A stretch of 64,000 bases of DNA from Salisapilia sapeloensis CBS 127946 (lineage: Eukaryota > Protista > Oomycota): assembly GCA_023334545.1 (NCBI GenBank), contig JAADVB010000089.1, positions 1,534-65,533 of the forward strand, read 5' to 3'. The translations under genes and the position numbers were made by a program. Numbering within the stretch: the stretch's first letter is position 1; each line of letters begins with the position of its first letter. The notes under the pieces are model-generated. The model had not been told where the DNA came from, searched no databases, and saw only the letters and a list, made by a program, of their open reading frames with translations. This document shows positions 14,159-32,144 of this stretch, in pieces.

Positions 14159-14982
14159 TTTTCATTTTCTTCGTTCTTGTAGAAGTATATCCTTTTGTTG
14201 CACTCCATCTTTCTTTCTCGGATTATAATCATTTAAATATGCACCAACGAGAAGCTTCTGGACAATGCTTTCACTTCATTCAATACTCATTTACGTAGCG
14301 CTCTTCTTCTATCTCGAATCATTAGAGAGCTGGAAGCTAATTTCATAGAAGGGCTTGGTGCTTTGCTTTCCAACATACATGGTAACTTGCGGTCGCGACC
14401 TCATTTGTGATTAATTCCCCTCCTAAAAGACTCGAGACTATTCATAAATCAATCCAGACATTGTAAGGAACGGCCTACATAGCTTCAAATGGTATTCATT
14501 TTCAATGGCTGGTTTCCGAAAGTGAGGAAAGCGTTGTCTTTGTATCAGCAATGTATCAAAATTTCAAGATACGAACAATAAACTTGCAGTCAAGGCCCAG
14601 GTGTCTTCTTATGCACGATCGCTTCGTAAATGGTCATCCACTAGCAGTGTATGGCAGCTTTCGTTGGAATCAAGAGAATCGTATCTCTAAATGAGTTCAT
14701 TCGACGGATAGTGCAGAGCATCGTTCGCTTAAAAGCTCTACATGCCGTTTACTTTATCTGACTTCCATTCGCTTGTATAGATCGGTCGTCTACACAAGTG
14801 AGATCAAGATTACCGCTTGCGTTGAAATAGCTAAGAGTTATAGTCCGCCCAAGTTTCCTCTCGGAAAGCTTTACGCCACGCTAACGAGACAAGTGAAAGC
14901 AACACAAGAAAGAGACTAAGGGTCAAAAACGAATATCATGTTTCCGGCTTGTGCTTATGGCAAGTCTAGAAGGCTAGTAGAT

Positions 14983-15291
14983 TTAAGCATGGTTGGAAGA
15001 AAGAGGAACCTCATAACCGTTACCAGAGTCGGCTTTGCCATAGCACATGGAAAGAGCGAGGAGGAGCAGAGAGAAGACAAGTCCGATAATGGACATGATG
15101 TAGACCGGCCACAAGCTTTCGCCGAAACCATAGATCAAGGTCAAGATCAGACCAATGACGTACGCGCCGAGCATGACCTTGCTGTGGTTACCAGCATTCT
15201 TGTTCTTGAAGACCGTGTAGGTTTCCTTGAAAAGGGAGACGGCGAGGAGGATCATGCCGATAAGGCCGAGGATGTTGTAGGCTTGAGTCAT
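14983..15291 (-). CDS. second SemiSWEET-like 3-TM protein (~102 aa), PQ motif replaced by KE
   Basis: ATG at 15291, with an Inr-like TCATTCTCACATTT at 15338-15325. Paralogous to 4737-5099 (YNILGLIG, KNA, GL.L..Y...E.LWP), but reads SLFKETY where the paralogue has SLVPQIY. Confidence 0.8.
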   Translation of the reverse strand: MTQAYNILGLIGMILLAVSLFKETYTVFKNKNAGNHSKVMLGAYVIGLILTLIYGFGESLWPVYIMSIIGLVFSLLLLALSMCYGKADSGNGYEVPLSSNHA

Positions 15292-17880: not shown

Positions 17881-20800
17881 TTATTCTGCTGATTCCTCCT
17901 CTTTCTCTTCCTTTTCCTCCTTTTCCTCTCCACCTTCCTTGTCCTCCTTCTCCACTTCTTCCTCTGGTTTCGTAGGAGACAACTGAAGTACAAGCTCCGA
18001 CGTAAGCAAAGCCGACGGCCCTTCCATCCCCGAGCTCTGCGTGTACCACAGGACAAAATCATCAAACGAAACCTCCAGCTTTTCATCCACATCCGCTTCC
18101 TGGAAACACTGGCGTGTCAGTACCACCCCCAGTTCTTCCGGCGTCGCACTTAATGCTTCCTGCAGCCCAGACGTCGTGGCATACAACACCTTGAAGACAC
18201 TCGTAAGGTACGCAGCCATTTCCTGGAACGAAATACCTCCGTCTCCATTCAGATCGAATAGATTAAACGCCGCACGCGCCTTTTCCTCCGGTGATCCACG
18301 ACACAGGACCGAGAGACCAGTGCAGAGCTCACTATAGTCAACATAACCTTTTTCTTCCACTTCAAAGATATAAAAGACTCGATCTAGCACAATCGCAGCG
18401 TCTTCTCCAACGTCCTTCAACAGCTCTTGAACACACTCGTCAAAGGCTGTTTTCGAAATCAGCCCGTCGTCACTACATCTAGACGCAAGTGCCGCAAAGA
18501 CTTCATTCGGTGCAAACTCCGTTAACCTCGTTGTCTTCTTCGCCGTCTCGAGCGTCAATTCATTCACGTTGTCCTTGGCCACGACACTTGGTTGCTCCGT
18601 TTCATGTCGATACCAGACCTGGAACTCTTCCAGACTGATCGTATCACCCACACCACGATCATGGAATGCTTCGGCAGCCGTGACTTTGCCTAGTTCCTCT
18701 GCATCGACCCCGACACGAGCGGCATACGACGGGTAGAGGTAGAAGAGCATCTTAAAGACACTCGTGAGACACATGCTCATGTCTTCTAGACGCATGCCTG
18801 TACCATTCGTATCAAATAGTTGAAAGATATCCGCCACTCGATCTTCACTCGATCCACCACAAAGCACGGAAAACCCACAAACGACTTGTACTAAATCCAC
18901 GATGCCGTCGTGCGCATACATCTTGCCAATCTCGTTCGCAAGTGTCTCTAGCCTCTCATCATTTTTCTCCACCGCGACATCCTCCATTAAATGACCCATT
19001 TCCTCCACACGTACGTTCGATACGTCCGATACGTGTGCCTGTAATGACGCATACAATTCATGAGGACGCATAGCATGTAGGCGAAGCATAGATGTAATCT
19101 CTCCTATCGTAAACGACGTCTCCTTGACGTCCTGCCCATCTTCCGTGCGCACCCACTTGCCAAACTCTTCTCGACTTAGTTGATCATCTTGATTCACATC
19201 AAACTGTCGAAAGCACTCTTCCATTGTCTCTTTCGCCAATTCTTCTGGAAGACAATGCGTCTGATCCTTGAGCTCCGGACTGACCTTGTACAATACTTTA
19301 AAGACCGCTCGTAAGAACGCTTGCATCTCTTCTCGAGACACATACCCATCTCCATCCGAATCATATAACTGGAACAAGGAGTCCGCACGCTCTTGTTTAT
19401 CTCCACCACATAAAATCGATAGCCCGGCACTCATCTCCAGCGCATCGATACGTCCATCCGCATCTTGATCAAACAATTCAAACAGTTCGAGCAACACTGG
19501 CTCGTCCGTCTTGCCATTCAACTTTTTAAAACTCTCGAGAAAAGCACTTTGCGTCAAGACATTCTCGTCATTCGCATGCGCTCGAAAGTAGGGAAGGACA
19601 GACGAAGCATCGTATTGATCTAATCCGGTCTGCTGGCGAAGTTGAAGGAGAGAGGACTTGACGTCCGTAGGGCTGGAGCTAGAGTACCAGTCTTTAAGCT
19701 GTTGGAACGTCACGCTGTCGCTACGTGCAGTCTTGAGCACATCTTGGGTCGTGACAGACGCAAGTTCCTTCGGAGATACGTGAGATGTACCGGAGGATGT
19801 CGCGAAGAGAACGGTGAAGACCGAGGCAAAGTACGTCTGGAGCTCATCAGGGGAGATACGTCCATCGCCATCGACGTCCATGAGCTCAAATGCAGCTTGA
19901 GTTTTCTCGTCTTGACTCCCGTCGCAGAGAGCAGAGAGACCACAAGCCAACGCGATGACATCAACCTTATCCTCTTCATTCTTGAACGCATGGAACAAGG
20001 TTTGCAGGACCGAGAGTTGGTTGACTGAAGGCGATGGGATCAAAGTAGCAAACAACTGATAGTAGACGCTCTTGGATAACATCCCTTCTTCATCCGAGTA
20101 CGATGCGACGGTATCAAAGACACGGTCTGGAGGTCCTAAATTCAATTCCGTCGTACCGGAGCTAGCGATCGTACTACCCATGTACCATCTCTGGAACTCT
20201 TCGAGACTAAGTTTCTCATCAGCATTCATATCAGCATCTACAAAGGCTTGTGCAGTAGTTAATTCAGCTAGACGAGATGGTGTCATCTGTGGCATTTGTG
20301 TCTGAGCATGTTTATCCGTTGCAAAGACGACGGTGTAGACGGCAGTCAAGTATGCTTGCATCTCCGTCTTGGTGATATACCCGTCTGCATCAGCATCAAA
20401 GAGTGCAAAAGCTGCTTCTAACTTACTTTCCGGTGGACCGGCGCAGAGAATCGATAGACCGGAACTTAATTCGACGAGATCGACGACGCCAGTACCATCG
20501 ATATCAAACGCATTGAAGAGACCATCGAGCAAGATCTCCACACAAGCATCCGTGCGACCTCCAATGGCTGCACAGCAGGCTTTAAAGTCTTCTTTCGTCA
20601 GCTCTCCGACGCCACTCGCGCTCTCGTGACTCTGCCGAACGTACGCGTCAAAGACCTGGAGAAGCTTTCGAGGTGGAATGCGATCGAGGCCGGTCAAATG
20701 TGCGATCTGAGGAAGCGTCAGGTGGAGCGCAGAGGAGAAGAAGGGCAGAACAGAACCGCTCTTGTACCACTGGCAAAAGTCTTCGAACGACACGCGTTGC

Positions 20801-21675
20801 TTGCGATTGCCACATTCCGAGAGGCAGTGGGAAGCAGCTTCTTGTGCAAAAGCTTGTGGATCAAAGGACGGAGTGTGCCAGAAAGCCTGGACAGCAAGGA
20901 AGACAGAGGAGATCAAGGTCGTGAGTTGAGACAAGGTGAGACTCGCGTGTTGCGAAGGATCAAAGAGATCAAAGAGAATACGGATCTTCACATCCTTATC
21001 GCCGGATGTGAAGGCTGCTAGACCTGCTAAGAGAGATGGAAGATGCACCTTTTTCGACGATGCTGGATGGCGTTTCTGGAAAAGCTCAAAGACTTGACCG
21101 AACGAAGCTCTTGTCAAACGATCGTATCGGCCGAATTCAGACAAGATACGATCGATGCATTGGTAGTACGTAGACTTGTCAATCGCGTTCGAAGACGTCG
21201 CTTTCGTGAAGATCTGGACGAGCGTTTCAAAGTCGAAATCGGATAAATCGACCGTCATGGACGCCTTCTCGTCTTCAACTTCACTGTCACTCGAGTCCGA
21301 GGAAGATTCATGCTTCACACGCGGCTTGGACGTCGATCGAGCAGTCGATATCGTGTGATTTGGACTTGGGACCGTCCGAGGATCTAGCACGAGGTCATAG
21401 ACTTTCTTCTGGAAATAGCTGGGATCTGCACAGACACACGAGAGAGGATAATACGTCTTCTTCTTCCGATCACGAAGCGCAACGGGCGATTGGAGAGCTT
21501 GAGCAGATGTGTCCGGCGCCGATGAATCCTCACTGCTTGCACTGTCTGTAGAAGCAGACTGGAACGCTGCTTGGAGACATCGCTGCACCTCCTCCACAGG
21601 GATGGACGGATATAGCGCGACACGCCGATGGCGGCCTTTAAGACGCACATGCACGGTTACGAAGGAGGAAGTCAT
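17881..21675 (-). CDS. 1264-aa multi-EF-hand protein with six tandem NCS/recoverin/CBL-like modules
   Basis: Intronless ORF. Six repeats of F..FD.dg.G.vD..El..GLS.LC.G..e.K...aF.lfD.dgDG.is..Em..yl.sVF, each ending F..W(Y/V). Separate ~95-aa N-terminal domain; acidic tail. Confidence 0.93.
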   Translation of the reverse strand: MTSSFVTVHVRLKGRHRRVALYPSIPVEEVQRCLQAAFQSASTDSASSEDSSAPDTSAQALQSPVALRDRKKKTYYPLSCVCADPSYFQKKVYDLVLDPRTVPSPNHTISTARSTSKPRVKHESSSDSSDSEVEDEKASMTVDLSDFDFETLVQIFTKATSSNAIDKSTYYQCIDRILSEFGRYDRLTRASFGQVFELFQKRHPASSKKVHLPSLLAGLAAFTSGDKDVKIRILFDLFDPSQHASLTLSQLTTLISSVFLAVQAFWHTPSFDPQAFAQEAASHCLSECGNRKQRVSFEDFCQWYKSGSVLPFFSSALHLTLPQIAHLTGLDRIPPRKLLQVFDAYVRQSHESASGVGELTKEDFKACCAAIGGRTDACVEILLDGLFNAFDIDGTGVVDLVELSSGLSILCAGPPESKLEAAFALFDADADGYITKTEMQAYLTAVYTVVFATDKHAQTQMPQMTPSRLAELTTAQAFVDADMNADEKLSLEEFQRWYMGSTIASSGTTELNLGPPDRVFDTVASYSDEEGMLSKSVYYQLFATLIPSPSVNQLSVLQTLFHAFKNEEDKVDVIALACGLSALCDGSQDEKTQAAFELMDVDGDGRISPDELQTYFASVFTVLFATSSGTSHVSPKELASVTTQDVLKTARSDSVTFQQLKDWYSSSSPTDVKSSLLQLRQQTGLDQYDASSVLPYFRAHANDENVLTQSAFLESFKKLNGKTDEPVLLELFELFDQDADGRIDALEMSAGLSILCGGDKQERADSLFQLYDSDGDGYVSREEMQAFLRAVFKVLYKVSPELKDQTHCLPEELAKETMEECFRQFDVNQDDQLSREEFGKWVRTEDGQDVKETSFTIGEITSMLRLHAMRPHELYASLQAHVSDVSNVRVEEMGHLMEDVAVEKNDERLETLANEIGKMYAHDGIVDLVQVVCGFSVLCGGSSEDRVADIFQLFDTNGTGMRLEDMSMCLTSVFKMLFYLYPSYAARVGVDAEELGKVTAAEAFHDRGVGDTISLEEFQVWYRHETEQPSVVAKDNVNELTLETAKKTTRLTEFAPNEVFAALASRCSDDGLISKTAFDECVQELLKDVGEDAAIVLDRVFYIFEVEEKGYVDYSELCTGLSVLCRGSPEEKARAAFNLFDLNGDGGISFQEMAAYLTSVFKVLYATTSGLQEALSATPEELGVVLTRQCFQEADVDEKLEVSFDDFVLWYTQSSGMEGPSALLTSELVLQLSPTKPEEEVEKEDKEGGEEKEEKEEKEEESAE

Positions 21676-22017
21676 AGCCGCACCCTTTGCGTCTGATCAC
21701 TTGTTCGGACGGACGATCTCGTCGTTTCCAGCTCTTACAAATTCCAAGTATACGTGGTAGATCCACCTTTTCGTGGGTCTAGGACCAATCTACTCAACAA
21801 AGTACGAATGAAATGAATCTTGAAAAGGTGTACACTGGATCCGAATCCTTTTCTAGGGTACTAGATATGACAGGTACTTGAGGTAGTCATTGTAGCAAGC
21901 ACCGAAATGGACGCTATCGAGTATGGCAGGTCGATGGAGATTTCGCAGATAAATGACTTTAACCGAAAACTCATTTCACTTGGATTTTTTCTTCCTCGTA
22001 CTCACCCACAGATAGCA

Positions 22018-23040
22018 ATGGCAGAGACATCTCCAGGTGATAAAGATAGTAGCTCTACAATGAACTCGACGTACAGTACAATGGATTCGAAACGTGTCAT
22101 TTTGATCACTGGAGGGACGTCTGGTATCGGATTCGAGTGCTGTAAAGCGTTATTGGAACGTTCCGACTTGCATGTGATGCTCGTCGGCAGTACACAACAA
22201 AGTGTTGATAACGCACTATCTAAACTGAAACCTTCAAAGTCTACGTCGGATACGCAATCGACGATTCAAGGGTTTGCATGCGACCTCTCCCAGCTAGCAA
22301 GTGTCCGTAGTCTGGTGAATGAACTCATATCGTCCAAGATGAAGCTGTCGACGATTATATGCAATGCTGCCGTCGAAGGTCCGCTCCATCCCATGACGGA
22401 AGATGGCTTTGAAACTACATTTGCAACCAATCATCTGGGACACTTCCTACTAACCACCGCGTTATTCCATGCTGGTGTCTTCGCGCAGCCGACTTCATCG
22501 ACGAAATCTCGATTGATCGTCGTGTCCTCTTCGCTGTACAACTCGCGTCGAACGCCGGATAATGGACCGGATGTCTCGAAATGGAAGCGCGTGGCATTTG
22601 GTGTGCAACCGGAATCCGACGCGACTTGGACATCCAGACAAGCCTACGCGACGAGTAAACTTTGCAACGTACTCTTTGCCCATGAATTTCAACGTCGGTA
22701 CGGAGATCAAGTCGACATGTATATCTTTTCCCCAGGCTTCGTCCCCGACACAAATTTATTCCGAAACCATTCGGCCATTGGATGGTTCTTTGCTAAAAAT
22801 TTGATAAAAGCCGTGAGTTACTGCAATGCAGTGGCAAAGATGAGCACGCCGAAGCGATCGGGAGACGTTTTAGCGAAACTTGGCGGTGATGTGGATGTGC
22901 AATATAAATCCGGATCTTTCATCTGGCTTGACGAGCTCCATGAAGCTAGTGACAAGAGCAAGGACCCTCGGATCGCAAAGCAACTATGGGAATTATCGAG
23001 TCACTGGTGTGATCAATCCGGATCCTCTAGAAGCGAATAA
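22018..23040 (+). CDS. short-chain dehydrogenase/reductase (protochlorophyllide-reductase/WWOX-like subfamily)
   Basis: ITGGTSGIG (TGxxxGxG), CNAA, TNHLGHFLLT, catalytic YATSK. Likely start ATG 22018, downstream of an Inr-like TCATTTC at 21971. Confidence 0.93.
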   Translation: MAETSPGDKDSSSTMNSTYSTMDSKRVILITGGTSGIGFECCKALLERSDLHVMLVGSTQQSVDNALSKLKPSKSTSDTQSTIQGFACDLSQLASVRSLVNELISSKMKLSTIICNAAVEGPLHPMTEDGFETTFATNHLGHFLLTTALFHAGVFAQPTSSTKSRLIVVSSSLYNSRRTPDNGPDVSKWKRVAFGVQPESDATWTSRQAYATSKLCNVLFAHEFQRRYGDQVDMYIFSPGFVPDTNLFRNHSAIGWFFAKNLIKAVSYCNAVAKMSTPKRSGDVLAKLGGDVDVQYKSGSFIWLDELHEASDKSKDPRIAKQLWELSSHWCDQSGSSRSE

Positions 23041-23136
23041 AAAATCTTCGAATTATGTATTGAAGTGCGTTTAAAGTGGTTTATAGAGGTTGCTAGAAGG
23101 TCGTCCGATTAGACAACATCCCTCAGACTCAGGAAT

Positions 23137-24036
23137 ATGGCGAGTCATGGCGTCATTAATGCCATCTTTGGGTCGTATGACCTCAGCAACGCCAAAAATT
23201 GGCGCAACGATGACATTGTCTATCGGGAACAGCAAGTCCAATGGCTGAATGACGACATTGCTCGCGCACACGAGTGGCGTCGAGCAGATATCATTCGCGA
23301 ACTGCGATGCGAGAAGCTAGAGAGTGAACACATTGCTTGTGATGCCCGAGCAGACCAACTTTCGACGGTAGCAGAGCAATGTGCTCTATTATCTGGTTTT
23401 TGTATCATCTCGATGTCGAATCTAGGTCTCCCAGACGACCTAAATTACGTCGTTTTCTTCCTATATGCGGTTTCCTGCTCTGCTGTCGCCATCACCTTGT
23501 TCCTAAGCGCAGTCATGTGCACGACTCTCACGCTTGCTGTTACAAGGTACGCTGGTGAAGAGCTGGAGCATAAAGTCGAAGCTTTGGACTTGACAGAGCT
23601 CCATGGAGATTCTCCATTTGGTCTCTGGTGGATCCACCGTTGCGAGCAGCAGCAGATGACGGCATACAAGTTTCTTGTTGTCGGCATCTCCATGTTCTTC
23701 CTCTACCTCGTGCTCGTCATTTGGATACAATTCGACCATTCGCTCATTACTACGACCTCCATGTCGGTAGTCATCGGCGTCGCGTTCCTCACGTGGCAAT
23801 TGCGCATGATCAGTCGATGGAGATACCTTTTCACACCTCCTAGGGCACCAAGACATTTACAACACACGCTACTGAACGCATCGCTAGAGGCACAGCAACG
23901 CCAAGCTCGAGCGTTTTCATCCAATTCCTTCATGCAAAACTCTGAAACGAGGAAGAACAATGCCAGTACTTTCGACATCCCAATCTCCCCTACGACACAA
24001 AGCAGCAGAACAAATTACGTCCAACATCAAAGCTAA
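23137..24036 (+). CDS. Orai/CRAC-family 4-TM channel-like protein with non-canonical pore residues
   Basis: TM1 ALLSGF motif (AEQCALLSGFCIISMSNL), four hydrophobic helices, TM3 ending W.QF, and an N-terminal repeated W..(D/A)D helix. Confidence 0.85.
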   Translation: MASHGVINAIFGSYDLSNAKNWRNDDIVYREQQVQWLNDDIARAHEWRRADIIRELRCEKLESEHIACDARADQLSTVAEQCALLSGFCIISMSNLGLPDDLNYVVFFLYAVSCSAVAITLFLSAVMCTTLTLAVTRYAGEELEHKVEALDLTELHGDSPFGLWWIHRCEQQQMTAYKFLVVGISMFFLYLVLVIWIQFDHSLITTTSMSVVIGVAFLTWQLRMISRWRYLFTPPRAPRHLQHTLLNASLEAQQRQARAFSSNSFMQNSETRKNNASTFDIPISPTTQSSRTNYVQHQS

Positions 24037-24174
24037 TATACACTATCCACTTTCATTTCTACTAGCTTGCATTCCTCATGCACGTCAATAGCTCCTAGCG
24101 AGAGCATGGAAACCCAGGAAGGCGATGAGGTCGTGCGAAGGTAGCTCAAAGGTAGCTTTTATCACCATAACAAG

Positions 24175-26568
24175 ATGGAGCCATCGGATGTCACGTCCTC
24201 GGCGCCTGCACACGGCCACCGCTTGCAGATTGCAACATGGATTATCCTTGCTGGTATCTGTGCACTTAGCATTTCCATTCGCATCTTTCCCGTCGCTTTA
24301 TGGGGCAGTGTACGTTCACTATTGCATATTACGTGCTCTATTGTCACCGAATGATGATACAACCTATCTATCAAGTCCTCATTCATCTTGTCATTTGCAA
24401 CTATCGCTTCTTACATCGTTGCACAATATCATTCTTCCCTCTAGACCATTATAGACATGCAAATATACTAATAAACGAGTTTCCAATAGGTCATTCACGA
24501 GTACGACCCACAATTTAATTTCCGTGTGACCAAGTTCCTGTCGCAATACGGCATTCAGGATCTGCTCTCTTGGTTCGATGACCGAGCATGGTATCCTCTA
24601 GGTCGCAGTGTTGGAACTACACTGTACCCAGGTCTCATGCTCGCAGCCTCCAGCATCCAATACGTCCTGCACGTCCTGTCGTTCCAAGTGGAGATTCGCC
24701 ACATCTGTGTCTTTCTAGCTCCTCTATTCGCAGCCTTATCCTGTATCTCTCTCTACTTCTTAACCAAAGCCGTTACGAACAAAACGTCCACCTCTCTCTT
24801 ATCCGCAGCTCTACTCGCTGTCTCTCCAGCATACCTCTCTCGCTCGACTGCTGGGTCGTACGATAACGAAGGCATCGCAATCTTCCTTCTTATCCTCACG
24901 TTCTATTGTTGGGTCCAGGCAGTACAACATGGCTCCATGTTCTTCGCTAGTCTAACAGCCTTGGCTTACTGCTTCATGGCTTTGTCCTGGGGAGGATATG
25001 TCTTCATCCTGAACATCATTCCACTCCACACACTCGTGGCGCTTGTCCAAGAAGGTGCTTCACCTCGAGTCTACATTGCCTACTCCAGTTTCTACCCACT
25101 CGCGATGCTTCTGTCGATGCAAGTACCGTTCATCGGCTTTAATGCAGTCCTACAAGGCGAGAGCATGGCAGCTAATGGCGTCTTCGGTCTCCTTCAAATC
25201 TGGGCCTTTGCAACGTACTTGAGATCAAAGCTATCTCCAACTGCCTTTGCAGCCTTGATTAAAGGCCTCAAGGTCACCGCTCTTGTTGTTATTGTTCTAA
25301 TTTTCATCTCCATTGTCTTCTTTCGTAAAATGCAGTGGAGTGGACGTAGCCTTACGCTACTTGATCCTACGTATGCCTCCAAGTACATTCCAATCATTGC
25401 TTCCGTTGGTGAGCATCAGCCGACGAATTGGTCCAACTTCTACCTCTCTCTCGGTCCTTCCATGCTCTTCATGCCTCTTGGTCTCTACTATAGCTTCGAA
25501 CGCTCGACCATCGCATCGTCCTTCATGATCGTCTACAGCATCACAGCGCTCTACTTTGCTGGTATCATGATCCGCCTCCTACTAACACTTGCTCCAGCTG
25601 CCTGTTACCTCAGTGCTGTCGGTTTCTCAGAACTCTTGACAGGTCTGTCACTAATGTGTCAACCAGCACCAACGCTCGAGATACCTCCAAAGCCAGAAGC
25701 AAAAACATCTATGCGTAAGAAGAAGGCGATGCAAGTGACTCCGCCAGAGAACGAAGAAACAGACTTTGTATTCATCGTTATTGCCAAAATCGGTAACGTC
25801 CTGTCCTTCCGACCTATGAAAAAGAGTTTCCAGGACACTCCGAGTCCAGTGAAACTTCTACTCGTTGCTGTCACTGTACTCTTGATCATTCATATTCGCC
25901 ACTGCTCGGCTGTTGCACGGAAAGCTTATTCGTCTACATCTTTACTTTTTGAACGACAGAACCGGACGACTGGAGAGTACATCATACGCGATGATCTTCG
26001 AGAAGCATACTGGTGGCTACGTCAGAATACACCAGGGGACACAAAAGTTCTTAGTTGGTGGGACTATGGCTATCAATTGTCTGTCATGTCGAATCGAACG
26101 ACGCTAGTAGATAACAATACGTGGAATAATACACACATCGCTACGGTCGGACGAGTCCTTACGTCTGATGAGGACGCAGCATTGCCAGTGCTCGAGAGTC
26201 TCGATATAGACTACATTATGATCTTGTTCGGAGGTCGAGCTGGTACCCCTGGAGATGACATTGATAAGATGTCGTGGATTCTACGGATCGCAGAAGGTGT
26301 GTTCCCGGAAACAACGATTGAATCAGAGTACTTGTATAAGGAGAAGATGGTCGTTGGTGAGAATGCGACTGCTCGAATGCAGCAGAGTCTCTTGTACAAG
26401 TTTAGCTACTACGACTTTCGAAATGAAGAGGATGGAACGAATTATACTGCCATGGATCTTAATCGTCGGGTACCTATCGATTCAAGCGGCATTCAATTAA
26501 AACACTTTGAGCCGGCATTTACGACTGAAAATTGGATCGTTCGACTGTATCGTCGAAAAAGACAATAG
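24175..26568 (+). CDS. STT3: oligosaccharyltransferase catalytic subunit STT3, 2 exons
   Basis: Exon 1 is 24175-24309 and the intron is 24310-24489. Exon 2 starts VIHEYDPQFNFRVT and contains GSYDNE, SVGEHQP, WWDYG, DNNTWNNTHIATVG and DDIDK. Confidence 0.97.
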
Positions 26569-28255: not shown

Positions 28256-29536
28256 ATGGCATGGAACATGACTGCAACCGCGGCGCCAGTCGCACCAACT
28301 CGACAGAAAACTATGCAAGAGATTATGGACGAAGAATTAGCACAACAAATGTATGAAGAAGAATGTCGTGGTCTGGAGCATGACATTAATCCGGAACGCC
28401 AGAACAATGTCTTTGCCCACATGGCACCATCAGCTCAATTCGAAGACACTCGTGCCAATTGGTTGAATGCAGAGACAGCCAACCTGGAAGATAAGGAGCC
28501 ATCGACTGATACAGACAGCAGCATTCCTACTGCCAAGACAGATCTTCGACTCGGGAGTAGTCCGAAGAAAGCATCGAGCAGCACTCTTCCTCGTCCGGTA
28601 GATGACTTTGCCAAGACACATAGCTCATTTCGTGAAGCCATGCGTCGACAGTACAAGTCGGACAAGAAAGGCTTGTCTGGACGAGTGGAAGCAGCTACGC
28701 ATGCTACGCGCGAAGGTGTATTGGACGAACGTACGGAACGTTTGATGCAAAAGCTAATCAATCGAGAAGAATTGGATGAAATGCACGGTATTGTCCAAAC
28801 GGGCAAAGAGGCACATGTCTTCCATGCCGTCGGAACTGACCCGGACACTTTTGCCGAAACGCATTTCGCGGTCAAAATCTTTAAAACGACATTAAACGAA
28901 TTTAGCAATCGACATGAGTACGTCACTGGTGACCATCGCTTCCAGCCGAACTTCAACAAGCATTCCAACCGACAGCAATTGCATACGTGGACCGAAAAGG
29001 AGTTCAAGAACCTCCATCGAGCGATTCAAGCCAAGATCCGAGCGCCACTACCGAAAGTCTTTAAGGAACATGTCTTGATTATGGAGTTTATCGGCGTCGA
29101 AGGCTTCCCTGCTCCACCACTCAAGGATGTATCGTTCGAGACGAAGCAGGAGATGGCAAGTGCCTACGTACAGATCTTAAAGTCCGTCCGGGAGCTCTAT
29201 CAGACAGCTCGTTTGGTCCATGGTGACTTGAGCGAGTACAATGTCCTGTACTTGGACAGCAAGTGCTGGCTCATTGACTTTGGCCAAGCCGTGACGACGA
29301 CACACCCAGAGGCTGAGACCCTGCTCGTACGCGACATGGATAATATCCGACAATTCTTTTTGAAAAGAGGGCTAGAAGCTTCAGATGAAGATGACTTGAC
29401 AGTCCTAAGTCGAGAGGAAGAAGTGGCATATGTGACGACGGAAAACGATGCTTTGGACACGATCCAATCTGCTAGTATGCAAACGCTTGTACGCGAGACA
29501 CAAGTAGGACGAGGTGATGTTCAAGACACGGAATAA
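28256..29536 (+). CDS. RIOK3: RIO-family atypical protein kinase, RIOK3-like
   Basis: QTGKEAHVFHA, AVKIFKT, VLIMEFIG, LVHGDLSEYNVL, IDFGQAV; N-terminal MQEIMDEELAQQM motif resembles RIO3-type kinases. Confidence 0.88.
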   Translation: MAWNMTATAAPVAPTRQKTMQEIMDEELAQQMYEEECRGLEHDINPERQNNVFAHMAPSAQFEDTRANWLNAETANLEDKEPSTDTDSSIPTAKTDLRLGSSPKKASSSTLPRPVDDFAKTHSSFREAMRRQYKSDKKGLSGRVEAATHATREGVLDERTERLMQKLINREELDEMHGIVQTGKEAHVFHAVGTDPDTFAETHFAVKIFKTTLNEFSNRHEYVTGDHRFQPNFNKHSNRQQLHTWTEKEFKNLHRAIQAKIRAPLPKVFKEHVLIMEFIGVEGFPAPPLKDVSFETKQEMASAYVQILKSVRELYQTARLVHGDLSEYNVLYLDSKCWLIDFGQAVTTTHPEAETLLVRDMDNIRQFFLKRGLEASDEDDLTVLSREEEVAYVTTENDALDTIQSASMQTLVRETQVGRGDVQDTE

Positions 29537-30491: not shown

Positions 30492-32144
30492 TCATGACAA
30501 TACGAGCTGGAAGTCGGAGATTAATGCAAAGATGAGCGTGACGATCGATAAGATCACTAGTGTGAGCAATCGCCTTGAATCCCATGCCGAATGTCGCCAC
30601 GGATACAATTTCCAGTAATACACGGTCGGCAGGATGTAGCACAAGAGCAAGAGCGCAGTCGATCCGACGAACGAAAAGACGAACTCGACACCAGGGACGT
30701 GCAATGCACACAAGACTTGCGTTGCCAACAGAAGAAATGCGACCGCAGCTTGGGCCATCCACTGCCCCATCCGATGTTTCCATCCGAATGCTTGTCTTCG
30801 CAACTCGGTCGTACTAACGTTGCGACATCGTATTTCCAACATTAACTCCTTTAACGGATGAAAGAGCAACGGAAACGACAACAAGATGGAGCCAAAGAGC
30901 GCTACACATGGGATCGTCATGATCGCGTCGTCATCCAGATTAAGCAAGATGTTGCCCTTCGTTGCTGAACCGTAGATACTCGCAGCGCAGTATCCAAAAC
31001 TTCCGTATAACAAAATGCACACAAACGCTGCTGCATAAACGTAGTATCGCATACGCCTTCCAGCTTGATGGAAATCGCTGTTGAACGCAATATCCAGCAA
31101 CCCGGAGCTGCTCGCAGTGTGGAACAATGACTGGAGTCCAGACTGACTGTGTGTCTCATTCCAACGCTGTGCGACTAATTGGGCCAGCAACGGGATCACA
31201 TTGAGATGCATCATAAAGGTGAAATTGTAGATGCCAAAGACTTCTGCAAAGTGAACCCCACTTGGTGACTCTTCCGGATGTACATTTCCTTTCTCCGGTA
31301 AGTCGTTCGGCAACGTGATGGCACGATAGGTTACTGCCGCCACTAGATACAGCACAAACGTGAAGCTTAGATAGGAAGAGTATCGTAGCGCCGAGATATT
31401 CTTCAACGTGCCAAGAGGCAATGCGACAAGAAGAAACACAAGCCAGACTGTGCGCAATACAAGCGTGTCTTGCGTTTCCATCGGCATGTCTTCAAAGGCA
31501 GTGCTGCTGAACGCATACGCGAATGAAAGAATCGTTGGTGCCATGTCTTTCACAACACGAACGCTACCAACGCATGCTCCAAACACAGCAAACGCAGTCG
31601 TAAACGCGACAAAACGAGCGAGCTTCGTTCCGCCTGCTCGTACAGCCAGTTCCTGATACGTTTCCTTCATCTCGGCTTCACTTGATTTACATGCAACGGC
31701 AACATGTACACGCAAGATAATGTCGGCCGTAAACGCCATGGCTGTACCAACAACTACAAGTACGATAAAAGCTGAAGTGGGCGATAGAAGAAGGAACGTG
31801 TAGGGTATGGACAAGGTGCCGGCGCCAATGGCCGACATGAGCAATGTAAACGGTATGGCACAATAGCTCGACACTTGTTTAAACCATGTCAAAATGCCGT
31901 TTCGAGTGTCTGGAGCAGTCAATTGTAGAGAATTAGTACTGCCCTTTAATGTTTCTCCGGATAATGCAGCAGCAGCGTCGATGGAGATGAGCTCACCATC
32001 ATCAAGTACGGATGGGAAGCCTCGCTCAAAAGAAGCGAGGTGTTCTCGGCCTTGAAGTTCTGGCGATAAAGATGCCGAGCGACCTGCTGGCGCAGATAGC
32101 AATGGATGTTGTTCGTAAGTTCCTGTCATCTCGTCGCATACCAA
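30492..32144 (-). CDS. amino acid/auxin permease (AAAP, SLC38-like) transporter
   Basis: About 11 TM helices; FTLLMSAIGAGTLSIPY, FMMHLNVIPL, GNILLN, SFPLLFHP, GSTA motifs. Confidence 0.93.
   Translation of the reverse strand: MVCDEMTGTYEQHPLLSAPAGRSASLSPELQGREHLASFERGFPSVLDDGELISIDAAAALSGETLKGSTNSLQLTAPDTRNGILTWFKQVSSYCAIPFTLLMSAIGAGTLSIPYTFLLLSPTSAFIVLVVVGTAMAFTADIILRVHVAVACKSSEAEMKETYQELAVRAGGTKLARFVAFTTAFAVFGACVGSVRVVKDMAPTILSFAYAFSSTAFEDMPMETQDTLVLRTVWLVFLLVALPLGTLKNISALRYSSYLSFTFVLYLVAAVTYRAITLPNDLPEKGNVHPEESPSGVHFAEVFGIYNFTFMMHLNVIPLLAQLVAQRWNETHSQSGLQSLFHTASSSGLLDIAFNSDFHQAGRRMRYYVYAAAFVCILLYGSFGYCAASIYGSATKGNILLNLDDDAIMTIPCVALFGSILLSFPLLFHPLKELMLEIRCRNVSTTELRRQAFGWKHRMGQWMAQAAVAFLLLATQVLCALHVPGVEFVFSFVGSTALLLLCYILPTVYYWKLYPWRHSAWDSRRLLTLVILSIVTLIFALISDFQLVLS

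Follow-up and report, generated by a model that had tools for sequence, protein, structure and literature searches.

Outside animals, Orai proteins are usually taken to be Ca2+-selective store-operated channels on the basis of family membership alone. In human Orai1, replacement of the selectivity-filter residue E106 by Ala, Cys or Gln abolishes Ca2+ conduction, E106D leaves a non-selective pore that has lost its preference for Ca2+, and V102A and V102C are constitutively open (PMC12893689). For oomycetes, two reviews of Ca2+ signalling state that no Orai homologue is detectable (PMC4820453, PMC9694693), and no canonical STIM has been reported in these organisms (PMC4820453). The Orai tree of Murphy et al. 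2024 takes in oomycetes; its alignment holds only Glu-type sequences of Phytophthora and Saprolegnia, and the authors emphasise that the Glu is kept in a divergent diatom class (PMC11085791). Here, we analyse an Orai-family gene of the oomycete Salisapilia sapeloensis CBS 127946, located at 23137..24036 on the + strand of a 64,000-nucleotide stretch (contig JAADVB010000089.1, positions 1,534 to 65,533, assembly GCA_023334545.1) that is referred to below as the window. Oomycetes were found to carry two conserved Orai lineages, one of which, including the window gene, lacks the residue that confers selectivity on the calcium release-activated calcium (CRAC) channel.

Family identity and residue register

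The assignment of this open reading frame (ORF) to the Orai family, proposed in an initial annotation made from the DNA alone, was borne out by profile and structure searches. Against the Pfam Orai-1 profile PF07856, the window protein scored 68.2 bits (E 9.5e-19, cut-off 25), with residues 67–233 aligned to profile positions 8–169 of 173, while its score against the Jiraiya/TMEM221 profile PF15038 fell below threshold (10.2 bits, E 0.54, cut-off 27). An AlphaFold2 model built on 23 homologues, with a mean predicted local distance difference test score (pLDDT) of 83.9, contains helices at residues 3–95, 104–149, 160–198 and 203–232. Foldseek ranked Orai structures first (probability 1.0, TM-score on target 0.6–0.7, E 4e-3). 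VIA-align gave a best Z of 13.8, with a root mean square deviation of 3.7 Å over 141 residues, and its six best matches were all Drosophila Orai (Z 11.2–13.8). Taken together, the profile match and the predicted structure identify the product as a four-helix Orai-family membrane protein, in which the first transmembrane helix (TM1) is prolonged as a long cytosolic helix.

When aligned to Drosophila Orai chains with HMMER, the window protein is anchored by an identical ALLSGF motif and runs through TM1 without a gap. The structural alignment, which pairs residues 61..238 of the model with 144..313 of the fly chain, reproduced this register independently, since the offset of +83 was constant in every Orai row. 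N95 (codon AAT, 23419..23421), at the selectivity-filter position, aligns with fly E178 (human E106) by both sequence and structure. On the cytosolic side, E80 (codon GAG, 23374..23376) aligns with fly K163 (human R91), S76 with K159 (human K87) and A72 with R155 (human R83). Y190 (codon TAC, 23704-23706), in TM3, aligns with E262 (human E190), and F122, in TM2, with H206 (human H134). An Arg is present at R71, one residue away from the pore line of TM1. The residue mapping given in the initial annotation, namely E106 to Asn, R83/K87/R91 to Ala/Ser/Glu and E190 to Tyr, was therefore the same by sequence and by structure, with the codons read directly in the DNA. Where a CRAC channel has a ring of Glu at its outer mouth and the basic residues R83, K87 and R91 in its inner pore, the window protein has Asn95 and Ala72, Ser76 and Glu80, respectively.

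Two Orai lineages in oomycetes

Phylogenetic relationships were examined with an alignment of 23 oomycete sequences, a tree of 123 rows and a careful tree of 37 rows. The oomycete Orai proteins form one supergroup (support 99–100) that is divided into two strongly supported clades, A and B. The statement in the reviews that oomycetes have no Orai is incorrect. Clade A comprises proteins of 286–343 aa from Phytophthora, Pythium, Globisporangium, Albugo and Lagenidium together with the window gene. Its support was 100 (14 rows) when the filter and R91 columns were dropped, and 100/100 on the 37-row tree. All of its members have Asn at the filter (100%), Glu at the R91 position and Tyr at the E190 position, and the filter Asn was invariant in every orthologue recovered, fragments included. 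N95, E80, L84, F88 and Y190 are fixed sites of the clade, and Asn95, Glu80, Leu84, Gly87 and Phe88 are unchanged across the span from Albugo to Phytophthora and Lagenidium. As judged from its placement and from these shared residues, the window gene is the local orthologue of a conserved clade and not a peculiarity of one genome.

The initial annotation had also raised the question of a canonical Glu-filter paralogue, and such a paralogue exists in other oomycetes as clade B. Its proteins are shorter (225–264 aa) and carry Glu at the filter in 94% of cases (Asp in Hyaloperonospora and one Peronospora), Gln at the R91 position in 83% and a conserved buried Glu in TM2, at window position 117. 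Forty columns, including positions of the N-terminal helix and an S-R-W-R-Y-L motif, are invariant across both clades, and the window protein keeps all 40. Both clades occur together in Phytophthora, Pythium oligandrum, Globisporangium ultimum, Albugo candida and Lagenidium.

The genes of the two clades are unlinked and have different neighbours, those of clade B belonging to a conserved block. In Pythium oligandrum, the clade-B gene and MCU are arranged head-to-head, 167 bp apart (L006:4250-6818), and are followed by a block encoding an aspartokinase/homoserine dehydrogenase, a PARP and a peptidase M48. In Albugo candida, MCU, Orai and the remaining genes of the block lie within 3 kb (L007:3283-7115), and in P. 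ramorum two clade-B genes stand on either side of the homoserine dehydrogenase gene (L004:8001-12695).

Matches from downy mildews (Peronospora, Hyaloperonospora, Bremia, Plasmopara and Peronosclerospora), obtained with a word-based search of limited coverage, were all of the Glu type, with no Asn type among them, and the Asn type may have been lost in this group. Aphanomyces, a member of the Saprolegniales, has an Orai protein with the Asn and Glu combination. A single origin of this combination before the Saprolegniales split was considered; in an approximately unbiased (AU) test, neither the placement of the Aphanomyces protein with clade A (p 0.39) nor that with clade B (p 0.12) was rejected.

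Pore residues across the Orai family

Since word-based protein searches reached only peronosporalean oomycetes, the family was surveyed with an exhaustive profile search of 1.84 billion representative proteins. This search detected 377 family members at E <= 1e-3, and the best 150 of them were aligned to the profile. In this set, 130 representatives, counting the window protein, could be scored at the filter column: 86 have Glu, 23 Gln, 15 Asn, 5 Asp and 1 Ala, and about one third therefore lack Glu. Ten of the non-Glu sequences were checked against Pfam Orai-1 and scored 70–160 bits, well over threshold. Parsimony on the 123-row tree required about 20 changes of the filter state, at least 5 of which are forced by well-supported branches. 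Gln occupies the filter in Selaginella, Closterium, Coccomyxa, Chlorella, Chromochloris and the rhizarian Lapot gusevi (P0124, P0140, P0163, P0120, P0100 and P0144). The loss of the filter Glu is thus widespread and extends to the so-called plant Orai of Selaginella and green algae.

The other pore positions behave differently. At the R91 position, the representatives carry Asn, Ser, His, Gln or Glu and never Arg; the R83 position holds Ala, Ser, Thr or Val, with Arg in one sequence only; and the E190 position is mostly Asn, Ser or Val. The K87 position is basic (Lys or Arg) in 93 of 123 sequences, and this basic residue has been lost in both oomycete clades. The description of the window protein in the initial annotation as having all hallmark pore charges altered holds in so far as all five positions differ from human Orai1; it is overstated because Orai proteins outside animals do not conserve R83, R91 or E190. 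Across the sequences compared, R83, R91 and E190 are features of animals, and it is the filter Asn together with the inner Glu that marks out clade A. In a cross-table, 32 of 40 Asn-type sequences have Glu at the R91 position.

Proposed function

It is reasonable, on sequence grounds, to set the window protein apart from the classical Ca2+-selective CRAC pores, because Asn is present in all orthologues, the human E106A, E106C and E106Q mutants lose Ca2+ conduction, and a clade with a Glu filter exists. On balance, we favour, with moderate confidence, the reading that the protein is a subunit of a pore whose selectivity for Ca2+ is not of the CRAC type, probably a low-selectivity cation channel in which Glu80 is the main charged site and whose gating is independent of STIM. 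As is expected from homology with other Orai proteins, it would assemble into a hexamer with a pore lined by TM1. Without a ring of carboxylates, the outer mouth would offer no CRAC-type high-affinity Ca2+ site, cations would be conducted with low or no Ca2+ selectivity, and the ring of inner Glu80 residues would form the main charged constriction. The Q/N site of Ca2+-permeable glutamate receptors offers a functional comparison. Gating, independent of STIM, would involve the long, strongly conserved helix at the N-terminus and the S-R-W-R-Y-L sequence that follows TM4, and the Ca2+-selective role would be left to the Glu-filter paralogue of clade B that adjoins MCU. Clade A keeps the hydrophobic gate (L84, F88 and I91), the glycine hinge and the acidic outer loop. 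The strict retention of Asn, with no drift to other neutral residues, argues for a working pore position, and the invariance of Asn95, Glu80, Leu84, Gly87 and Phe88 makes a working pore more likely than a dead one.

Several observations weigh against this interpretation. In concatenated human Orai1 hexamers, a single E106Q subunit stops Ca2+ influx (PMC12893689), and a ring of Asn could be non-conducting, since E106Q, the closest human mutant, does not conduct. The window protein has the longest end branch in clade A (1.08) and is its fastest-evolving member, with 13 private changes, mostly conservative, at sites that are at least 95% conserved in the clade. Whether filter Asn and an acidic R91 position vary together was asked with an independent-pairs test, for which the supported branches supplied no more than 2 independent pairs, too few to reach significance.

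The sufficiency of a single E106Q subunit to block influx also feeds the main rival explanation, in which the Asn-type protein forms no channel of its own and joins the Glu-type paralogue in heteromeric hexamers, tuning or suppressing their Ca2+ conduction and selectivity. The co-occurrence of the two clades in the five oomycete groups named above is consistent with such a role, as are the near-invariant N-terminal helix and S-R-W-R-Y-L motif common to both, which are possible shared surfaces for assembly or gating. We nevertheless consider a regulatory subunit unlikely, given that the Asn-type and Glu-type genes are not linked and differ in their neighbours and that a purely negative subunit would need neither an invariant Asn nor an invariant inner Glu; the downy mildews, in which the limited search returned the Glu type alone, point weakly in the same direction, as the Glu type evidently works there without the Asn type. 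A scaffold or signalling protein that has the Orai fold and does not conduct would have a precedent in the animal Jiraiya/TMEM221, which is described as derived from Orai and as lacking the residues that bind Ca2+ (Schaffer et al., bioRxiv 10.1101/716472). The faint Jiraiya match of the window protein (E 0.54) and the many losses of the filter Glu within the family fit this idea; the far higher score on Orai-1 (68 versus 10 bits) and the strict conservation of the gate and hinge (L84, G87 and F88) and of the polar or charged pore line (N95 and E80) speak for a pore and render a mere scaffold quite improbable.

The conventional reading, a classical Ca2+-selective store-operated channel in which D100, D101 or E80 replaces the filter Glu, has in its favour the outer acidic loop that the window protein keeps. 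The database name of its orthologues, "calcium release-activated calcium channel protein", agrees with it and reflects family membership only. Since even the conservative E106D substitution destroys Ca2+ selectivity in human Orai1 (PMC12893689), oomycete papers report no canonical STIM (PMC4820453) and the inner basic ring is absent, we regard this reading as very improbable. Finally, the long branch and the 13 private substitutions might be thought to indicate a decaying or mis-called gene. This is effectively refuted by the intact frame of 299 codons, the discrete transcript, the retention of 40 out of 40 invariant columns and the confident AlphaFold2 model.

In addition to the proposed low-selectivity pore of clade A, a broader and more doubtful proposal can be made for the family, which we put forward tentatively: Orai proteins with an amide filter (Asn or Gln) might form a channel class of their own in protists and early plants, one that is ancient, has recurred and differs in function and selectivity, acting alongside the MCU-paired Glu type or in heteromers with it. 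On this view, the acidic ring of the oomycete pore may have been shifted to its inner end, with N95 outside and E80 inside, mirroring the Glu/Gln arrangement of the sister clade. We found no description of a natural Asn- or Gln-filter Orai in the full-text literature, a weak negative given that most subscription journals fell outside its scope. Clade A is a conserved, undescribed variant of a known family. The E106N/Q experiment has, in effect, been done many times by nature, and its outcome retained, which poses the question of how an Orai pore behaves without the Glu ring and without STIM. In oomycetes, Ca2+ entry governs the release, swimming and encystment of zoospores and the formation of appressoria (PMC4820453), and the answer therefore bears on the biology of important plant and animal pathogens.

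Features of the window protein

All features described here lie on the + strand. The conserved cytosolic N-terminal helix (residues 9–72, 23161..23352) belongs to the predicted helix 3–95 (pLDDT >90) and is continuous with TM1. It is the best-conserved part of the protein and is proposed, for that reason, as an element of gating or partner binding. F11, G12, S13, Y14, D15, K20, W22, R23, D26, R30 and Q32 are invariant in its first part, and Q35, W36, D39, R43, W47, R48, R54, R57, E64, A70 and R71 in its second part. The helix bears three repeats, W22-R-N-D-D26 (23200..23214), W36-L-N-D-D40 (23242..23256) and W47-R-R-A-D51 (23275..23289). The initial annotation had noticed these spaced W..(D/A)D repeats as elements of unknown role; they are present, all 23 oomycete sequences in the alignment have W22, W36 and W47, and the distribution of the repeats reaches well beyond this group. 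Outside oomycetes, repeat 1 is recognisable by W22 (31/36), R23 (35/36) and D26 (30/36), repeat 2 by W36 (25 of 48 representatives) and repeat 3 by R48 (70/83) and D51 (56/84). Chlamydomonas, Ectocarpus and Cyclotella also show the W motifs in the alignment published by Murphy et al. 2024 (PMC11085791). Being common in non-oomycete members and visible in published algal sequences, the W repeats are, as far as their distribution indicates, an ancestral cytosolic element of algal-type Orai proteins. From helix geometry, the Trp spacings of 14 and 11 residues would place the three side chains on one helix face.

TM1, the pore-lining helix (residues 73–95, 23353..23421), has its register set by sequence and structure, and the pore line would be formed by A72, S76, E80, L84, F88, I91 and N95. 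Within it, A83-L-L-S-G-F88 (23383..23400), the glycine hinge and phenylalanine gate, is the same as fly ALLSGF, and F88 is invariant. The outer loop between TM1 and TM2 (23422..23445) keeps an acidic vestibule with P99-D100-D101, P99 being fixed in clade A. TM2 and its cytosolic extension span residues 104–149 in the AlphaFold2 model (23446..23583) and include F122 at the position of fly H206. An S-P-F-x-x-W-W-x-x-x-C-E motif (residues 159–170, 23611..23646) precedes TM3 and is conserved, with F161 kept outside oomycetes in 108 of 112 sequences, W165 in 111 of 114 and C169 in 102 of 114. TM3 (residues 160–198, 23614..23730) contains the Tyr190 that is fixed in clade A. TM4 (residues 203–232, 23743..23832) ends in the invariant S-R-W-R-Y-L (23812-23829), whose W228 is kept in 71 of 82 sequences outside oomycetes. 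The remaining residues, 233–299 (23833..24033), form a variable C-terminal tail of mostly low confidence (pLDDT 42–71); such tails are unalignable among orthologues, and a helix predicted at 239–261 is not conserved.

Gene structure, transcription and genomic context

The ORF (23137..24036, +) is complete and intronless and encodes 299 aa, with an intact frame and a stop codon at 24034-24036. In word-based protein searches, its close relatives were oomycete proteins only, with 47–58% identity, which places the window in a peronosporalean oomycete. Contigs from three sequencing runs of the same organism skip a GT..AG intron of 180 nt in the STT3 gene (24310-24489) that a DNA run retains, which identifies the three runs as RNA. 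In two of them, discrete contigs (23127-24052 and 23139-24052) cover the Orai ORF without a joint and flank it by about 10 and 16 nt. These unspliced contigs define a minimum transcript span of 23127..24052 on the + strand, with very short untranslated regions (UTRs), expression level and exact transcript ends being outside their reach. The Orai gene is transcribed and unspliced. In the third RNA run, a single contig (22153-24055) takes in the neighbouring dehydrogenase gene, the 96-nt spacer and the Orai gene; it could be due to read-through, overlapping UTRs or an assembly merge.

The flanking genes are ordinary eukaryotic ones, encoding a short-chain dehydrogenase (21907-23040) and the oligosaccharyltransferase STT3 (from 24526). 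The first exon of STT3 lies upstream of the long ORF starting at 24526, with a candidate ATG at 24175. Further downstream are genes for a RIO-domain kinase (28256-29536, +; PF01163, E 3e-60) and an amino-acid transporter (30492-32144, -; PF01490), both apparently of an ordinary housekeeping kind. A tblastn search of the window detected neither a second Orai gene nor an MCU or DHHC gene.

An intronless gene for an EF-hand protein of 1263-1264 aa with many EF-hand pairs (17881-21675, -) lies 1.5 kb upstream of the Orai gene, with one gene between them. A pairing of the two as sensor and channel was considered and rejected, as the neighbourhood of Asn-type genes varies between species: it includes a DHHC gene and an inverted duplicate in P. 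sojae, a GMC oxidoreductase gene in Albugo, and Yip1 and RCC1 in Pythium oligandrum, and the adjacency of EF-hand and Orai genes is not kept in P. sojae, Albugo candida or Pythium oligandrum. The duplicates of P. sojae are two near-identical Asn-type Orai genes, inverted and 5 kb apart (L001:8001-8915 + and 14167-15096 -). An 870-aa "palmitoyltransferase" of Lagenidium giganteum (P0077, L009:814-12314) is a chimeric model that joins a DHHC protein to an Asn-type Orai and bridges 11.5 kb with other genes inside. A linkage of Orai to DHHC genes, suggested by P. sojae and by the Lagenidium fusion, was rejected, because the Lagenidium model is chimeric and Pythium has no nearby DHHC gene.

Comparison with known systems

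Animal Orai channels (human Orai1 and Drosophila Orai; PDB 4HKR, 6BBF and 7KR5) belong to the same Pfam family as the window protein and share its four-helix fold and long cytosolic TM1. The ALLSGF hinge and gate are identical, and the hydrophobic gate positions and the acidic outer loop are common to both. The window protein differs from them in its filter Asn, its inner Ala, Ser and Glu, the Tyr that replaces Glu in TM3 and the Phe that replaces His (H134) in TM2. Its N-terminus, moreover, is a conserved helix of 70 residues with W-R-x-x-D motifs, it lacks a conserved C-terminal coiled coil, and a canonical STIM partner has not been reported from oomycetes. Jiraiya/TMEM221 (PF15038) also has an Orai-derived fold with the Ca2+-binding residues lost, but, unlike the window protein, it is specific to animals.

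Algal and plant-type Orai proteins (Chlamydomonas, Ectocarpus, centric diatoms and Selaginella) share with the window protein the N-terminal W-R-x-E-D, the P-F..W..C-E loop and the Trp after TM4, and likewise have no Arg at the R91 position. In contrast to the oomycete proteins, they mostly keep a basic residue at the K87 position, and where they have lost the filter Glu, many have Gln rather than Asn (Selaginella, Closterium, Chlorella and Coccomyxa). A further known system is clade B, represented by the Phytophthora sequences of Murphy et al. 2024 (PMC11085791, Fig. 8 and Data S2), which shares the N-terminal helix, the S-P-F..W-W..C-E loop and S-R-W-R-Y-L, and differs in its filter Glu, the Gln at the R91 position, the TM2 Glu, its shorter length and its location next to MCU and homoserine dehydrogenase genes.

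The human Orai1 mutants E106Q, E106A and E106D have the same ring of six filter side chains neutralised or altered. They keep the basic inner ring and are either dead (Q and A) or non-selective (D) (PMC12893689), whereas the amide of clade A is natural, conserved and paired with an acidic residue at the R91 position.

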